DNA from: Saccostrea echinata
Taxonomy: Eukaryota
NCBI RefSeq assembly: GCF_033153115.1
Contig: NW_026889781.1
Span: 7,874,001 to 7,938,000, forward strand
Direction of reading: 5' to 3'
Length of the DNA: 64,000 nucleotides
The translations under genes were made by a program, and so were the position numbers. Shown here in pieces: positions 41,429 through 48,320 of this stretch. The notes beneath the pieces were generated by a model, which made no database searches, was not told the origin of the DNA, and saw nothing but the letters and a program-made list of their open reading frames with translations. Every line of letters starts with the position of its first letter. Positions within the stretch are counted from its first letter, which is position 1.

Positions 41429-44400
41429 AGAATTGATTCTTCAGGGTGTTTTGTACTTCATAATTATTATTATTATTATTATTATATATCTTTGTTTTTC
41501 TTTACTGTTGAATTGTATTTGTACAAAGTGAAAGTAGACATATTTCACACATGGTTTATGTAATGCAAAATTTGCCAGCTTCTATCTATATAATTCAAAA
41601 TCAGCCAGCGTTGTGATTATTTGTAAAAAAAAAAAAAAAAAAAAGGTATTTTTTTTAATGCTTTCTTTTCCTGTGAAGTTCTATGTTTTGATATCAGATT
41701 TTAGTTGACCGTTTATGTTTTTTTTCAAGGACGAATGTATTGATCAGCTGTGTATTGTTTAGCCTTTAGAAGCATAGAGTATTTTTTTCTTTCTTTTCAT
41801 TGCACTTACCAGCTTCTGATGTGTGCATTTTATCATACTTTTAGAACTGATAACACTTCTTTCTGGATGTCTGCTTTGCAATAAGAAAAACTTACGTTTT
41901 ATAGATAGGAAGGTGTAAACACATCTCTTGCATCTTGTTGACATCCGTTCTAGGAACAGTGTACGTATCCACTTGTACTGTATTGATTCGGTCTGCTTTC
42001 CCATTGTTCGTTATAAACCCGTTAAATATACTTGAATATGAAAAAATACTTATATATTTTTAGAAAAACACATTGAATTATTTTCTCCGAATTTTTAATT
42101 TTTTTTGGTAATTTAATTTGAAAAGAACGACTACTCCATCGATAAACTGGTTTCCCGCCCCGTGATCTTGACGATAATGGACGAGTTTACCATGTTAAAT
42201 CCCCGTAGACTTTGAATTTGCCGCCGTGTCAATACACCGGTTGAACTCAAGGGTTCGAATAAATGGAGGAAAATTGGAAAAAAAATGATCTATCTATCGG
42301 ACCTAAGTTGAAGGCCAAGGTATTTATATATTTTAAGATATGTTGCAAAAAGTGGTTACAATAGCTTGGTGGGACAGACTATAAATCAAGAGATTGTGCC
42401 GGACCTGTTGAAAGACAGGTAACTTTCTCCATCTTCGGCCTCTCGCAACCACCGTTCTAACAGTACTCATGCATGCATGACATCAGAGACATCATCCTTA
42501 TCTTTTTCTATAAAAATAATTAAAAAAAAATCCCATTAAATCTGCAAGATCAACTTCATGAATTCGTCAAGGCAAGTTGTAAAAATGAAAAGTCCTAACT
42601 TGAATGAACATTTAATATGATAAGGCAGATTATAAAAAAATGTATTTAACTAAATTTGATACCCTATAGGAATTGTTAACTTCAATACTTACCCTTTGGC
42701 CTTCGCTTTCCGATTTCAAGACTGGAAATAAACATAGCTTGATAATATTAAAACCAGAAGTGGGAAACAATTAAATTCCGAAAAAATAGCTGTAAAGCGA
42801 TGCTGACAGAACCCGGGCACTATCGATCTTAACTCCCTTCTTCGGACTACTTATATTTAACCACAAAAAAACCTTGGCCAATGAGAAACCAGCCAATAAA
42901 CAATACAACAAGGAATAAAAAGTTAAAAACAAAACAAAAACTGAGAAAAATCTTTAGTTTTACTAAATGATTACCTCTTTGTTATACTACATGCACTACG
43001 GGTTCATATCACATATAATACATGTATTAAAGTTCATAAAGGAAACTGTCTTTTAGATTTTTTATGTGCCTAAAAAATAAAATGCCTCATATAAAATATT
43101 AGGATTTTACCAAAGGTGCTTGAGGATTCGACCCCCTCCCGATATAGACCCAGCGGGCCTTTCTGAATAATGGACAGAAGGATGAAACGTTCGCTCAACT
43201 AGGACCTTAGGTCATCAGCTCAGTTCTCAATTATCAAAACTGTTTACACCGCGACAAAATGCAGTGTATTGCAACCGTAAAGTGAAAATAGAATAAACCG
43301 CACTACTGTGAAGCCTTTACAGTGTAAAACAACAAACAGTAAATCTATTTTTGCCAAAGGAATAATCATTTGATATTAGGAAAGATACGGGGGAGGGGGG
43401 CATTGACTGCAATAGGCCCCCTATTATAAAATATAAGTTATAAAGCAATGGATTACGTTGGGTTACCTGTGGTCTCCTTAATGATATTATTATTCCATGT
43501 AAGGCAACAGTATCTATTTGACAAGTACCTAACCTCTGATCTCCTCAGTAGTATTTCAGAGTAGACGACCTCCTAGCTGTCTCTGCATTCGCAGATCTAA
43601 CAGGCAGGGGGAGGAGGAACATTGTAGGTCTTACCCCCTACCCCGCTTGGACTCTTCAGTGATCCTTAAAGATAATGGAATAATTATTTGGTAATAAATT
43701 GTATTAACTGTCCTTTGGTCTCCCTTATGAGGTCATACCGACCTTATCAGTTTAACACTTTAGTAAACCTCTGGTTATTATTAATTTTACAGAATAGATG
43801 TACGCCCTGTCTTGCGAGGATGGGGGCTGGAGTTCACCTCCCCCCTTTCCCTGGAATTTACACTTATCAAATTTATAAACGAATCAAAACTATATTTTCC
43901 AAAATAATAAACTTAAAAAACATAGGTCCATTGTCAATTGCTTCTGGGATACATATAATGTATATGAAGAAAAAGTTGTCTAATATCATCCCCCATCCAA
44001 TTACATAAATTTAGAAAATTTATTTGGAGAAATTGTAAACTTGTTTGCTTGTAAAAAAAATCAGGGTCTCATTTTTTGTTTGGAGTGGATTTGAAAAATA
44101 ATTCTAATAATGAAGGAGAATTTAAAAATTCCCATATTTATAAATGTTTACGAGATTAAACTTTAGTAATTCGTTCTATTGAGTCGAAGTCCCGAGTTGT
44201 CAACGGCTTTGTCTTCTATGACCTCTCCAATTGTCGACATCTTTTCCAGTTATTTCTCTTTGCTAGACGTTCATACAGAGAAGATTGACCGTCCATAACC
44301 AAAGAAATATATTCGATGTCAAAATTTCAACCGGCCATATTGTGTATTTTATTTATTTAGCGTAAAAATCCATTCAATATATGTTTTCTTACGATAAGCT

Positions 44401-44443
44401 TTACGAGTTCTATTGACCATTGACACCTATGGCGTTTCAGTAC

Positions 44444-46753
44444 TATCACGATGAAAATTTTACTGTTATAAGAGATTTTTCTAGTTTCTAAAATTAAGTT
44501 ACTGTTTTGTGTTTTTTTGAACAACGCTTTCTAAATTCTTGAGCTTTTCAAATCATTTTCTTTATTGAATTTACGACTCTTAATCTTTATTGAATTAAAA
44601 CATCGGCGATTCAGATAATCCAATCCAGTTGGGTTTAACGCCTGTCATCGTTTGATATTGCTAAATTATCTTTAGGCAAAATAACATCAAAAGGACGATA
44701 ATCTGGCCCTCAATTATTTTAAGGGTCTACTCAAGTGTCAAAACCTTTATCTATTTATCTCCAAATGTCATTTTTACACATGTCACTCTATAATTGTTAT
44801 ATATACTGTTGAATTTGTTTTGGATGATCAGTCGGAATCGGACAGCCGTCCCGAGTACACCGACCTGTATCAAAATTTGTTAGTTCCATATTAAAAGTTA
44901 AAACGCTGGTCGGAGTTTGTCTCAAATCTGTTTGATAAGACTCATAGATAGAAAGGAACGTAAATCGTGGCTGACAGAATCCGTGAGCGGCATCGTCAGG
45001 GAACTCAAAGAGAAGTTCTTCAAGCGAGCAATAAGACGTTCATAGTTTCTACATAGTCTTATTTTAGCACAGCCTGAGTGTTGATCGGGCGAGATTATTT
45101 AAAAAAAAAATGTGCTAATTTGTGCAGATATCCGGGTACAACACCACCTCTCATGAAGCTAAGCGAGTATTCCCCAAATCTCAAAGTTTCCGAGGACGAC
45201 CAGCTTTAACATTGGACTGACATGCAGTTCCGACCACAGTGGCAGGTTTCAGCGCCGCTTTGCAGCAGATGTAACAGACGGCATTACTCCGTCTGCAACG
45301 CCTTGGAGAAACGCTGCCATAGATGTGGAGAAGAGGGACACTTTAGCAGAGTGTGCGGAGAACGTTCGTGCCGCGCTGTAAAATCGGATGCAAAGAGGAA
45401 AAGGGACACCGAACGACTGCAGGATTACAACAGCAGGAAAAGACTGTTCCGGGTACTTCCATTTGCAAACATAAGTGATTCCAAATTTAAAGAGTGTGTC
45501 AATTTAAAGTCAGTGTTTTCATCAGAAGTTCAGTCCGTGGTAAAAGATCTCCAATATACAAAAGCGCTAATGAAAATGGACATTGAAATCCTAGAATGGA
45601 AATTGGAAAAACAGTCAAAGTCGAACGATGAAAAAGATCAACAGATAAAACTGTATTCTACATACTTAAACTATGCCGTGTCAGATCTAAAGAAACTTTC
45701 CGGACTTGTTTCCCATTACAACTGGCTTCTGGAAAATTATGAAATGGAACACATCGTACTGCGATCAATCAAACAGAACTGTATGTGTAAAAGAGATGTT
45801 GAAAACAGTAAACTTGTCCGAAAGGAATATAGACAGTTTAAAGATTCTGAATTATACAAAGAAATTTTGAACACTAAATTTTGAATATTTACTATTGCAC
45901 AATGTTTTATTTTTTATTTACATGTGTATATTTTTTTTAAGTTTGAGGACAAACTTTTTGTGGCAAGGGGAGAATTGTCATATAAAAATTTAAATTGAAA
46001 AAATTCTAAATTTTTGTAGAGGACAGATTATCACGATGAAAATTTTACTGTTATAAGAGATTTTTCTAGTTTCTAAAATTAAGTTACTGTTTTGTGTTTT
46101 TTTGAACAACGCTTTCTAAATTCTTGAGCTTTTCAAATCATTTTCTTTATTGAATTTACGACTCTTAATCTTTATTGAATTAAAACATCGGCGATTCAGA
46201 TAATCCAATCCAATTGGGTTTAACACCTGTCATCGTTTGATATTGCTAAATTATCTTTAGGCAAAATAACATCAAAAGGACGATAATCTGGCCCTCAATT
46301 ATTTTAAGGGTCTACTCAAGTGTCAAAACCTTTATCTATTTATCTCCAAATGTCATTTTTACACATGTCACTCTATAATTGTTATATATACTGTTGAATT
46401 TGTTTTGGATGATCAGTCGGAATCGGACAGCCGTCCCGAGTACACCGACCTGTATCAAAATTTTCAGTTCCATATTAAAAGTTAAAACGCTGGTCGGAGT
46501 TTGTCTCAAATCTGTTTGATAAGACTCATAGATAGAAAGGAACGTAAATCGTGGCTGACAGAATCCGTGAGCGGCATCGTCAGGGAACTCAAAGAGAAGT
46601 TCTTCAAGCGAGCAATAAGACGTTCATAGTTTCTACATAGTCTTATTTTAGCACAGCCTGAGTGTTGATCGGGCGAGATTATTTAAAAAAAAAATGTGCT
46701 AATTGTCATATAAAAATTTAAATTGAAAAAATTCTAAATTTTTGTAGAGGACA
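44444..46753 (+). mobile_element. Non-autonomous retroelement with split direct repeats A1-[gag-like ORF]-PPT-B1-A2-B2 and 4-bp TSD
   Basis: A1 44444-45119 and A2 46029-46703 (about 4 differences); B1 45976-46025 identical to B2 46704-46753; PPT AAGGGGAGAAT before B1; GTAC at 44440-44443 and 46754-46757. Confidence 0.85.
45222..45884 (+). CDS. Gag-like protein (220 aa): double zinc knuckle followed by predicted coiled coil
   Basis: CSRCNRRHYSVC...CHRCGEEGHFSRVC (CX2CX4HX4C) at the N-terminus; intact ORF inside the split-repeat element. Confidence 0.7.
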   Translation: MQFRPQWQVSAPLCSRCNRRHYSVCNALEKRCHRCGEEGHFSRVCGERSCRAVKSDAKRKRDTERLQDYNSRKRLFRVLPFANISDSKFKECVNLKSVFSSEVQSVVKDLQYTKALMKMDIEILEWKLEKQSKSNDEKDQQIKLYSTYLNYAVSDLKKLSGLVSHYNWLLENYEMEHIVLRSIKQNCMCKRDVENSKLVRKEYRQFKDSELYKEILNTKF

Positions 46754-46929
46754 GTACCACGTGACCCCTATCTAATTAGTGGAGATTTTTACTTCGAGGA
46801 CCCTATTTTACGGGCGTTTCCTCGGCATTATTTTATAATTAAACGATAATTATATGTTTCAAGAATGTAATAGTGTTTCATTTTTAAGAAATTTAGATAA
46901 AAACCCTTTAAGAAAGACCAATGCTCACT

Positions 46930-48320
46930 CTACATGTATCTTGTACATCAATAGGATACCAGAGGACACCTTATATTGTACATTAATAGAGAGAACACCT
47001 TATGTATTGTACATTAATGGAGGCCTTCTTAAATAAAACATCATTAGGGAGACCATGCAGACGTCACGTAATGTTGTGTATGAATACAGAGACCAGAGGT
47101 CCCCTTATATTGTACATCATTGGGGAGACCAAAGGTCACCTTATATTGTACATCAATAAGGAAACCATGCAGTCATTTATATTGTACATGAATAGAGAGA
47201 CCAGAGGTCACCTTTTGTTGGACATCAAAGAGGTCACATAAAGTTGTCTGAATACAGAATCCATAGGTCCCCTATGGTATGCATCAATAGGGAGACCTGA
47301 GGTCACATAATGTTGTGTATGTGAATACGGAGACCCAAGGTCCCGGCCCTATATTTGAACATTATTAGGGAGACCAGATGTCTTCCTGATGATTACAATA
47401 TACACAACCTCAATGTGACCTTAGGTCTCCCTTATGATATACGTTATAAGGGGGCCTCTGGTCACATTAAGTTGTGTATGTGAAATCGGAGACCCGAGGT
47501 TCCCTTATAATTAAACATCATTAGGCAGTCCAGAGGTCTCCGTAGTCATGTACAATATATACAACTTATGTGACCTTTGGTCTCTTTAATAATGTATGTT
47601 ATTAGGGGACTCCTGGTTTCCGTATTCATCACCTCTAGTCTCCCTCATGATGCACAATCCAAGGGAACCTTTGGTGTCCGTATCAATATATGAATACGGA
47701 GATCAGAGGTCTCACTAAATACGGAGTTCAGATGATTTCTTATATAGATCATCATAAGGGAGACCAGAGGTCATAAATAAAATGCATATTAATGCGGATA
47801 CCAGAGGTATCCATAATAGAACATAATAAAAGAGTCCTCTGATCTCCCTATTGATGTACAATACAAGGTGACCTCTGGTCTCCCTATTGATGTACAATAA
47901 TAGCTCTCCTATGGTCTCTCTATTGATGTACAATAATAGGTGACCTCTGATCTCCCTATTGATTTACAATATAAGGTGACCTCTGGTCTCCCTATTGATG
48001 TACAATAATAGGTGGCCTATGGTCTCCCTATTGATGTACAATATAAGGTGACCTCTGGTCTCCCTATTGATGACTAATATATATAGTGGCCTCTGGTCTC
48101 CCTATTGATGTACAATATAAGGTGACCTCTAGTTCTCCTAATGATGTTCCATCAAAGGTGACCTCTGGTCTCCCTATTGATTTACAATATAAGGTGACCT
48201 CTGGTCTCCCTATTGATGTACAATGTAAGGTGACCTCTGTTCCCCTGTTGACGTACAATATAAGATGGCCTCTGGTCTTCAATTTGATTGTAACATTAGC
48301 TTACCTCTGGTCTCCACATT
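46930..48320. repeat. 36-bp minisatellite array with orientation switches
   Basis: Unit TCCCTATTGATGTACAATATAAGGTGACCTCTGGTC, best conserved at 47835-48290; reverse-complement units at 46940-47380. Confidence 0.85.

Follow-up and report, generated by a model that had tools for sequence, protein, structure and literature searches.

Our data indicate that the element at positions 44444 to 46753 of the window (the whole 64,000-nt stretch of Saccostrea echinata DNA analysed here) is, on balance, probably a young copy from a family of small non-autonomous LTR-type retrotransposons. The cDNA ends of these elements would be joined to each other, and a DDE integrase acting in trans would open the joined molecule at an internal site resembling an LTR-LTR junction. 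Tyrosine-recombinase elements are commonly recognised by their split direct repeats, and "no TSD" is one of the points used in their curation. The same geometry is found here together with clean 4-bp duplications and LTR-type priming, and annotation pipelines would misclassify such elements.

The split-repeat layout of the window element is real. Comparison of the repeats reproduced what a first-pass annotation of this DNA had reported, namely the order A1-internal part with ORF-B1-gat-A2-B2, the repeat identities, the total length of 2310 nt and the presence of GTAC on both sides (44440-44443 and 46754-46757). The features are as follows:

44200-44443, no strand: left flank, host repeat, ending in GTAC (44440-44443), the left target-duplication copy
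44444-45119, + strand: A1, 5′ long repeat; starts TATCACGATG (left integrase-type end) and ends GTGCTA+AT, adjoining the primer site
45120-45138, + strand: primer-binding site, tRNA-type, decayed; TTGTGCAGATATCCGGGTA in the window copy, TGGTGGAGAATCCGGGTA in sister copies
45222-45884, + strand: ORF of 220 aa; two CCHC knuckles at the N-terminus followed by a long coiled coil
45941-45975, + strand: conserved hairpin (45941-45954) and polypurine tract GGCAAGGGGAGAAT (45962-45975), directly 5′ of B1
45976-46025, + strand: B1, 50-bp "mini-LTR"; TGTCAT start (LTR-start motif), GAGGACA end (right integrase-type)
46026-46028, + strand: gat, 3-base spacer between ..GGACA (right-type end) and TATCAC.. 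(left-type end)
46029-46703, + strand: A2, 3′ long repeat
46704-46753, + strand: B2, identical to B1; right end of the element, ..GAGGACA
46754-46940, no strand: right flank, the same host repeat continued, beginning with GTAC (46754-46757), the right target-duplication copy

A1 and A2 of the window copy differ by three mismatches and one indel (676 nt versus 675 nt), each difference being private to one of the two repeats. B1 and B2 are identical, and together with the AAT in front of B and the G behind it the identical stretch measures 54 nt. In alignments with two canonical cousins, L075 and L076, A begins and ends where their LTRs do, and A1 is homologous to a complete canonical LTR. By eye, the first ~22 nt of B1 resemble the start of A.

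Both flanks of the window element are parts of one host repeat with more than 400 copies. In a search with the left flank the best 40 of 406 candidates were scored (90-93% identity), and at four uninterrupted paralogues of the host repeat the matches to the left and right flanks were contiguous with an overlap of exactly 4 positions. The overlaps at these paralogous empty sites are:

C54, 43254572-75
C2, 23730050-53
C14, 20446319-22
C30, 15228140-43

Because the flank matches overlap by 4 positions at these sites, GTAC is a true target duplication, and the earlier claim of a 4-bp TSD was borne out. Perfect 4/4 flanking repeats, all of different sequence, were present at 10 of the 15 family loci with both ends readable (chance expectation among 15 loci about 0.06); the remaining five showed a 3/4 match (four loci) or 0/4 (one locus). 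The ten loci comprise three full copies (GTAC in the window, GTAT and AGAC in the others), one B-first copy (C30, which uses the B start as left end and has its own duplication, TAAG) and six A-B units. Integrase-type LTR elements have short duplications of fixed length (4-6 bp) and inverted termini of the TG..CA type; the length here is 4 bp at ten loci. The first-pass annotation had also suggested testing whether all copies begin TATCACG and end GAGGACA with independent 4-bp duplications. The duplications of the ten loci are independent; C30 starts at B, and an older copy, L026, starts TGTCACG. The termini are TA..CA in the window family, TG..CA in L026 and C30, and TGTCGT..ACGACA in a second family.

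The priming signals are those of LTR elements, with a primer site after the 5′ repeat and a polypurine tract before the 3′ repeat. The earlier statement that no canonical TGG primer site follows A1 is wrong for the family: copies C2, C27 and C83 carry TGGTGGAGAATCCGGGTA with canonical TGG directly after A, and in the window copy TGG is mutated to TTG, with further changes. A 20-base query holding the 18-base primer site gave 61 matches in the genome versus one for the control (2 mismatches allowed), and these matches sit right after LTR-type ends in several families. With T-stem, acceptor stem, discriminator A and CCA, the reverse complement of the site reads as a well-formed tRNA 3′ end; none of nine loci examined held a tRNA gene matching it. 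The position of the polypurine tract directly before the TG of B1, likewise noted before, is conserved, as the joint is intact in 6/6 copies that keep it and is homologous to the joint between polypurine tract and LTR in the cousins. The arrangement of hairpin, polypurine tract and LTR start is common to L075, L076 and the second family (L039), and the hairpin motif of the cousins has 113 matches in the genome. Complete identical LTRs at both extreme ends are present only in C83; in the other copies the LTR as defined by reverse transcription (B-gat-A) is split, with B missing at the 5′ end and an extra B after the 3′ A.

The polypurine tract adjoins B on its 5′ side and the primer site immediately follows A, so that the genomic copies are circularly permuted relative to an element with a B+gat+A LTR. 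The RNA would start within A1 and end within A2, spanning the primer site, the ORF, the hairpin, the polypurine tract, B1 and gat, and its reverse transcription would give cDNA with B-gat-A as LTR. Joining of the U5 end to the U3 start would follow, either in a 2-LTR-type circle or through an end-to-end jump; a trans-acting DDE integrase would open the joined molecule at B-gat-A, and the opened molecule would be inserted with a 4-bp duplication. The product, A-internal-B-gat-A/B, would be a permuted provirus that is still able to give the same RNA. The internal joint may represent a fossil LTR-LTR circle junction captured inside the LTR, the original U5 end apparently being out of use. We infer the joining step, the internal opening with B-gat-A as its site, and the identity of the enzyme. 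The first-pass annotation had proposed a 2-LTR circle opened at CA/gat/TA; of this proposal the permutation of a B+gat+A LTR and the integrase-type ends stand, and a closed circle can only be inferred.

An internal LTR-LTR junction reportedly served as attachment site in the SNV constructs of Panganiban and Temin (1984). Integrase cleavage of 2-LTR circle junctions was reported in vitro for PFV and HIV-1 (PMC11054761, PMC1180852, PMC1905944), and integrases can cleave palindromic LTR-LTR junctions (PMC1180852, PMC1905944); the accepted substrate of retroviral integration is linear DNA, not circle junctions (PMC11054761). As in these systems, right- and left-type LTR ends meet in the oyster element at an internal palindrome-like joint and are used as insertion ends. 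The SNV, PFV and HIV-1 junctions were engineered or studied in vitro, whereas the oyster elements are natural families with repeated occurrence of the expected product, the enzyme and the intermediate being presumed.

The joints between the repeats were compared among copies. B-gat-A occurred 13 times, was nearly invariant and looks like an LTR-LTR circle junction. The insertion-end motifs ..GGACA and TATCAC.. adjoin at this joint, 53 bases inside the LTR, and the right end of the cDNA, ..GTGCTA+AT, was never used as an insertion boundary. While B-gat-A is constant, the A/B joint varies between copies. In the window it is GCTAAT/TGTCAT, which reads like the form expected if the U5 end were joined to the U3 start via AATT microhomology. 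C2 and C27 have an additional TAAT (GCTAAT+T/AAT+TGTCAT), and this would correspond to a blunt join of the predicted unprocessed ends. Truncated A, cut back to 109, 416 or 641, is joined to (G)AAT+B in C30, L030 and L010, and a copy of the second family on C33 shows the same pattern.

Two further full copies, C2 and C27, are laid out like the window element, at sites with flanks and duplications of their own. The second family (L039) shares this layout; its ORF is 33% identical, its duplication is GCAT, its termini TGTCGT..ACGACA are perfect, and its internal joint ACGACA-TT-TGTCGT is a palindrome. The layout recurs in three full copies, in many A-B units and in a second family. The first-pass annotation had left the choice between an undescribed mode of replication or integration and a one-off aberrant integration, and this recurrence decides against the one-off event. 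C83 is the only canonical-form copy in the family (B-gat-A...B-gat-A); with LTRs that are 100% identical, an unprocessed right end GCTAAT and no duplication, it has the form that would be expected of a captured linear cDNA. C30 and L017 are B-first copies with three B's, a form that would be expected from staggered nicks on either side of one B in the joined molecule. A1 and A2 differ by 0-3 mismatches in C83, C27 and the window copy, and both B's within one copy share a copy-specific variant (G, T or C at one position). Since the A1/A2 differences are private and the B's share the variant of their copy, each pair of repeats derives from a single template in each cycle, in which both A's and both B's are regenerated. 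A reading with A+B as the LTR and a deleted 5′ B was rejected, as the same "deletion" occurs in independent copies and in the second family.

A linear route without a closed circle is unlikely, though it, too, agrees with most of the data. A alone would be the functional LTR, as it is in the cousins; plus-strand priming at the purine-rich end of B (..GAGGACAGAT) would set the left end TATCAC, the unprocessable end ..GCTAAT would be extended by RT, which would use AAT(T) microhomology to copy a B-gat piece at the left end of this or another cDNA, and integrase would trim ..GGACA/GAT as an ordinary near-terminal end. In the cousins a purine tract and AT directly precede TATCAC or TGTCAC, which is the position of ..GGACAG+AT here, and L012 may keep AGAT at its left end, as from an imprecise primer cut, with AT-rich flanks making this boundary ambiguous. 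A linear route would yield A-internal-B-gat-A/B only. In line with this, only one of the two possible permutations is present in 4/4 full copies, and A-internal-B alone, the expected product of a 1-LTR circle, is absent among 5 informative copies. A closed circle has two identical opening sites, so the single permutation hints, in small numbers, at a directed and possibly linear route. A linear route would also explain why the A/B joint is fixed on its (G)AAT+B side and variable on its A side, and the third B of C30 carries a 7-nt deletion missing from its other two B's, as if copied from another molecule. Against the linear route, the conserved strong polypurine tract precedes B and not A, the end of B in the second family (..AAACGACATT) is not purine-rich, and an unusual extra template jump would be required in every cycle. 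The canonical copy C83 starts at B, and priming before B therefore does occur.

An improbable alternative combines DIRS-like copying with integrase-type insertion: the whole RNA from A1 to B2 would be copied, with the B-gat-A joint guiding completion of the ends, the A/B joint would be inherited and not remade, and a DDE integrase would insert the product. Most A-B units of the second family run collinear through the A/B joint, so the joint may be largely inherited instead of being remade in each cycle, and the close relatives C2 and C27 share the +TAAT joint. Inheritance of this kind is difficult to reconcile with A1/A2 and B1/B2 being homogenised within copies and different between copies, or with the precise junction of a truncated A to the start of B at four or more loci, the second family included. 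Moreover, C83, from the same recent burst, shows that LTR-type cDNA of the ordinary kind is produced.

Tyrosine-recombinase elements insert without target duplication, and the trinucleotide that flanks them equals that of the internal junction (PMC3266345, PMC8969392). It is very improbable that the window element is a non-autonomous Ngaro/PAT-type element whose circular cDNA recombines at the B/A junction with a tyrosine recombinase acting in trans. The order A1-internal-B1-A2-B2 with scattered solo A-B units is exactly the Ngaro layout, and in Ngaro/PAT elements, too, the internal B/A joint is the joint of the circularised element (PMC8547959, PMC8969392). The flanks of the oyster copies never repeat GAT. 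The ten different 4-bp duplications, none related to GAT, together with the window's duplication as confirmed at the four paralogous empty sites, largely refute this reading. The oyster element further differs by its tRNA-type primer site, its polypurine tract, its TG/TA..CA ends and its LTR cousins, which share primer site, polypurine tract and terminal motifs and have 4-bp duplications themselves (L075 TATG, L076 TGTG). No recombinase, RT or RNase H was found in the element or in the 84 relatives of its ORF, all of them short stand-alone proteins and none fused to RT or recombinase.

Rearrangement of a single copy, nested insertion or faulty assembly could account for the odd layout of the window locus only and can practically be dismissed, as C2, C27 and the second family have the same layout, each with its own duplication and flanks, no inner duplication was found, for which reason nesting was rejected, the repeats are not identical, unlike those of a collapsed assembly, and the paralogous empty sites fit a clean insertion.

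Among other known elements, TRIM/LARD-like elements and the cousins L075 and L076 share with the oyster element the primer site, a hairpin before the polypurine tract, the tract itself, LTR motifs, 4-bp duplications and dependence on enzymes acting in trans. The LTRs of the cousins are at the extreme ends, whereas the oyster element has the 50-bp B between polypurine tract and A, lacks B in its 5′ copy and has a second B after the 3′ A, so that it is permuted relative to the RT-defined LTR. Plant retrozymes are reported to be small and non-autonomous, with LTR-like repeats, primer site, polypurine tract, 4-bp duplications and a circular RNA stage (PMC4918200). The oyster element resembles them in all but the last of these points, its own circle being a presumed one. 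It differs from the retrozymes in that it has an ORF and that no ribozyme was found in it, and its circle would be DNA with a U5-U3 joint, not RNA.

The copies look like repeated products of an internal LTR-LTR-type junction used as a pair of integration ends. They bear on the old question whether retroelement DNA with joined ends can ever integrate productively, and offer a natural system for a direct look at extrachromosomal retroelement DNA as well as a concrete scenario for the evolution of permuted retroelement architectures. We tentatively suggest, as a possibility short of an expectation, that in a lineage of integrase-type retrotransposons of bivalves U5-U3-joined cDNA (a 2-LTR-type circle) is a regular and obligatory substrate of a DDE integrase, opened at the internal attachment site. 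If true, this would be the natural counterpart of the long-rejected circle-junction integration model, and a bridge from ordinary LTR elements to Ngaro/PAT-style split repeats that is independent of tyrosine recombinase.

An autonomous partner encoding DDE integrase or tyrosine recombinase, for which the first-pass annotation had suggested to look, was not found by searches based on ORF, primer site or hairpin. The ORF search of the genome gave ORF-sized relatives only, and one relative that was examined, on C85, had no pol ORF. A library search with the ORF returned 84 relatives, all short or matching via the knuckles only and none fused to RT or recombinase. Pairing of primer site and hairpin across the genome gave internal lengths of 274-1656 nt only. 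The genome contains at least 1,922 integrase-domain loci, many in intact long ORFs; none of them was near the primer-site matches listed. Ribozymes (hammerhead included) or known RNA families were not detected in the element. Three thin public read runs, searched for the empty allele, gave short contigs of other family copies only, without the joints, and no circular or joined extrachromosomal DNA was seen.

The 220-aa ORF of the window element contains no capsid, protease, RT, integrase or recombinase. The Gypsy-like character proposed earlier for the internal part has the nucleocapsid-type double zinc knuckle as its one basis; with neither capsid nor pol present, the Gypsy assignment, which is defined by a pol of the order PR-RT-RH-IN and by RT phylogeny, is unproven. 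The Cys and His residues of the knuckles are invariant in 33 ORF relatives, a profile search matched EIAV NC p11 (E = 2.6e-7) and also HIV-1 NC, and a helix is predicted over residues 96-207. The product is a nucleocapsid-like zinc-knuckle/coiled-coil protein. The cousin L076 carries a related zinc-knuckle ORF, and the C2 and C83 copies encode exactly XP_061169071.1 of Saccostrea echinata.

Re-reading of the window bore out the order A1-internal-B1-gat-A2-B2 and the flanking GTAC on both sides that the first-pass annotation had described. The features of the element are as follows:

44444-45119, A1, long repeat
45120-45975, internal part
45222-45884, ORF of 220 aa, with a pair of CCHC knuckles at the N terminus and a long helix
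45976-46025, B1, 50-bp repeat, followed by gat
46029-46703, A2, long repeat
46704-46753, B2, 50-bp repeat

A1 and A2 differ by three mismatches and one indel, and B1 and B2 are identical. The ORF is the sole notable one of the element, and pol is absent. Pfam recognized only a zinc knuckle in the ORF. A profile built from 33 ORF relatives matched nucleocapsid proteins of retroviruses (EIAV p11, E = 2.6e-7), its remaining matches all being coiled coils, and structure prediction placed a helix over residues 96-207 behind the knuckles. Because of these matches and the predicted knuckles-then-helix structure, the product is nucleocapsid-like and not a full Gag. The exact product of the copies on contigs C2 and C83 (loci L032/L033) is found in RefSeq as 'uncharacterized protein LOC133178355' of Saccostrea echinata, so that the element ORF is carried there as a host gene. 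Related ORFs are annotated in Mytilus edulis.

The flanks of the window copy (44200-44443 and 46754-46940) are parts of a host repeat present more than 400 times in the genome; between its copies the left part is 90-93% identical and the right part about 80%. This allowed the empty-site check proposed in the first-pass annotation to be run on paralogues. At four uninterrupted repeat copies the matches to the left flank (ending with GTAC) and to the right flank (beginning with GTAC) are contiguous, and comparison of their coordinates gave an overlap of exactly 4 positions. The GTAC duplication is real. Perfect 4-bp duplications were found at 10 of the 15 evaluable loci, compared to a chance expectation of about 0.06.

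A has about 43 matches in the genome, and the internal part is present in 6-7 copies. On C2 and C27 the order is again A-internal-B-gat-A-B, and these two copies have duplications of their own, GTAT and AGAC, respectively. Six stand-alone A-B units are flanked by perfect duplications (GTTA, GTAT, ATAT, CCAG, CTAC, ATAC), and four further units by duplications matching at three of four positions. A second family (locus L039), whose ORF is 33% identical, repeats this order. Its termini are perfect (TGTCGT..ACGACA), its inner joint is palindromic and its duplication is GCAT; besides a single full copy it includes numerous old A-B units. These independent insertions refute the option of a one-off aberrant integration. 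The copy on C30 begins one B earlier (B-gat-A-internal-B-gat-A'-B') and is flanked by TAAG. The C83 copy (L006/L005, G000:C83:1499924-1502238) is a canonical B-gat-A-internal-B-gat-A element with 100% identical LTRs and an intact ORF; the right end has not been processed, and a target duplication is absent. This copy resembles a linear cDNA that was captured without the help of an integrase, or a recombination product of two copies.

The element is of the LTR type. In sister copies a primer site, TGGTGGAGAATCCGGGTA, follows A with AT in between; read backwards it gives T-stem, acceptor stem, discriminator and CCA. It is mutated in the window copy. A 20-base query with this site gave 61 genome matches versus 1 for the control; the matches follow LTR-type ends in several families and lie about 110-165 nt upstream of distant ORF relatives. 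A hairpin and then the tract GGCAAGGGGAGAAT precede B. Two ordinary small LTR elements of the same genome, L075 and L076 (duplications TATG and TGTG), share the primer site and have a hairpin and a polypurine tract of the same type. Their LTRs start with TATCACAG and TGTCACAG and end with GGTCACA and GTGTGATA, respectively. The start of A, and the GTGCTA+AT with which A ends, align with their LTR ends, and the start of B aligns with their LTR start downstream of the polypurine tract. From these alignments and the rules of reverse transcription it follows that the LTR is B-gat-A. A is the homologue of a whole LTR, and B, which has preserved both a left-type start and a right-type end, is a mini-LTR of 50 bp. 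The structural reading of the first-pass annotation is supported, and its assignment to Gypsy is unproven. Genome-wide, a superfamily of small elements has in common one 18-base primer site (61 matches), one hairpin ahead of the polypurine tract (113 matches) and internal lengths of 274-1656 nt.

Each cycle renews both pairs of repeats. Where A1 and A2 differ, the difference is private to one copy, and at one position that varies among copies the two B's of a copy always agree (G in the window and C30 copies, T in C2 and C83, C in C27). This pattern is consistent with an RNA that has just one B and whose R region lies within A, and it speaks against B1 and B2 being copied separately. The B-gat-A joint is near-invariant across 13 sites, while the A-to-B joint differs between copies and looks like U5 joined to U3. 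In C2 and C27 the latter reads GCTAAT+T, then AAT+TGTCAT, which is the right end in its predicted unprocessed form (+1 primer base) joined bluntly to the left end (+3 polypurine-tract bases); in the window joint the same two ends overlap by AATT. A stops early, at 109 in C30, at 416 in L030 and at 641 in L010, and is there joined exactly to (G)AAT+B, and in a family 2 copy on C33 A(1-206) is joined exactly at the start of B. A fixed B side with a variable A side is the pattern expected from end joining or from an end-to-end template jump.

On the right, every insertion boundary is ..GGACA; on the left it is TATCAC.. or, more rarely, TGTCAT... Among the copies obtained, A's own end never serves as a boundary flanked by a duplication. 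The ..GGACA and TATCAC.. motifs lie 3 bases apart at the B-gat-A joint, which resembles an LTR-LTR circle junction. Since the A end is unused in these copies and the used boundaries meet at this joint, the most likely course is that the two ends of the cDNA become joined and that a DDE integrase provided in trans opens the molecule at B-gat-A and inserts it with a 4-bp stagger. Nicks flanking one B rather than gat would yield the B-first copies with three B's (C30 and locus L017). The permuted provirus would give the same RNA if promoter and R lie within A, making the cycle self-consistent. A closed circle as intermediate is unproven. Integrases have been reported to cut palindromic LTR-LTR junctions (PMC1180852, PMC1905944), and a 1984 experiment with an internal circle junction had the same design as the internal joint of the element; the accepted substrate of retroviral integration is linear DNA (PMC11054761).

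This scheme has weak points. Only one of the two possible permutations was seen, no A-internal-B product occurs among the copies, no joined DNA turned up in the thin public read sets, and a genome ORF search, primer-site/hairpin pairing and integrase-domain hits identified no autonomous partner or enzyme. The single permutation and the missing product are better accounted for by a linear route, with copying of a B-gat piece onto the cDNA's right end; we consider this route rather improbable. Ngaro elements share the layout and the solo A-B units (PMC8547959), but tyrosine-recombinase elements make no duplication and start and end with the trinucleotide of the circle junction (PMC3266345, PMC8969392), whereas the 4-bp duplications here all differ and are unrelated to GAT, and Ngaro identity was rejected. 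In the literature searched, the term 'split direct repeats' was tied to tyrosine-recombinase elements in each of the 17 papers using it, and we came across no account of an integrase-type element with such an arrangement.

Some partial copies have inverted joints: A(1-628) is followed by an inverted A end in L014, A(1-617) by reverse-complement B and then B in L018, and reverse-complement B lies ahead of gat-A in L021. They resemble snap-back or auto-integration products. In L025 (G000:C2:21227713-21228113) A(1-401) stops exactly past an internal CGGACA, similar to the right-end motif of B, with no matching duplication at its ends (CTAC versus TGTA); this may be use of a cryptic end or coincidence. 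Cousin families also occur as tandem internal-LTR-internal arrays. Three cousin ORFs are spaced by 1.5 and 2.9 kb on C33 (G000:C33:27028775-27034026), and the hairpin lies 610-740 nt upstream of the primer site in L050 (C2:32514500-32515954) and at C56:21905075-21905814. Next to the window element, 46937-48317 holds two blocks of ~36-bp tandem repeats in opposite orientation. Since their arms (47058-47167 and ~47840-48240) are 78-88% complementary, the blocks suggest a foldback-like satellite or the termini of a different element.
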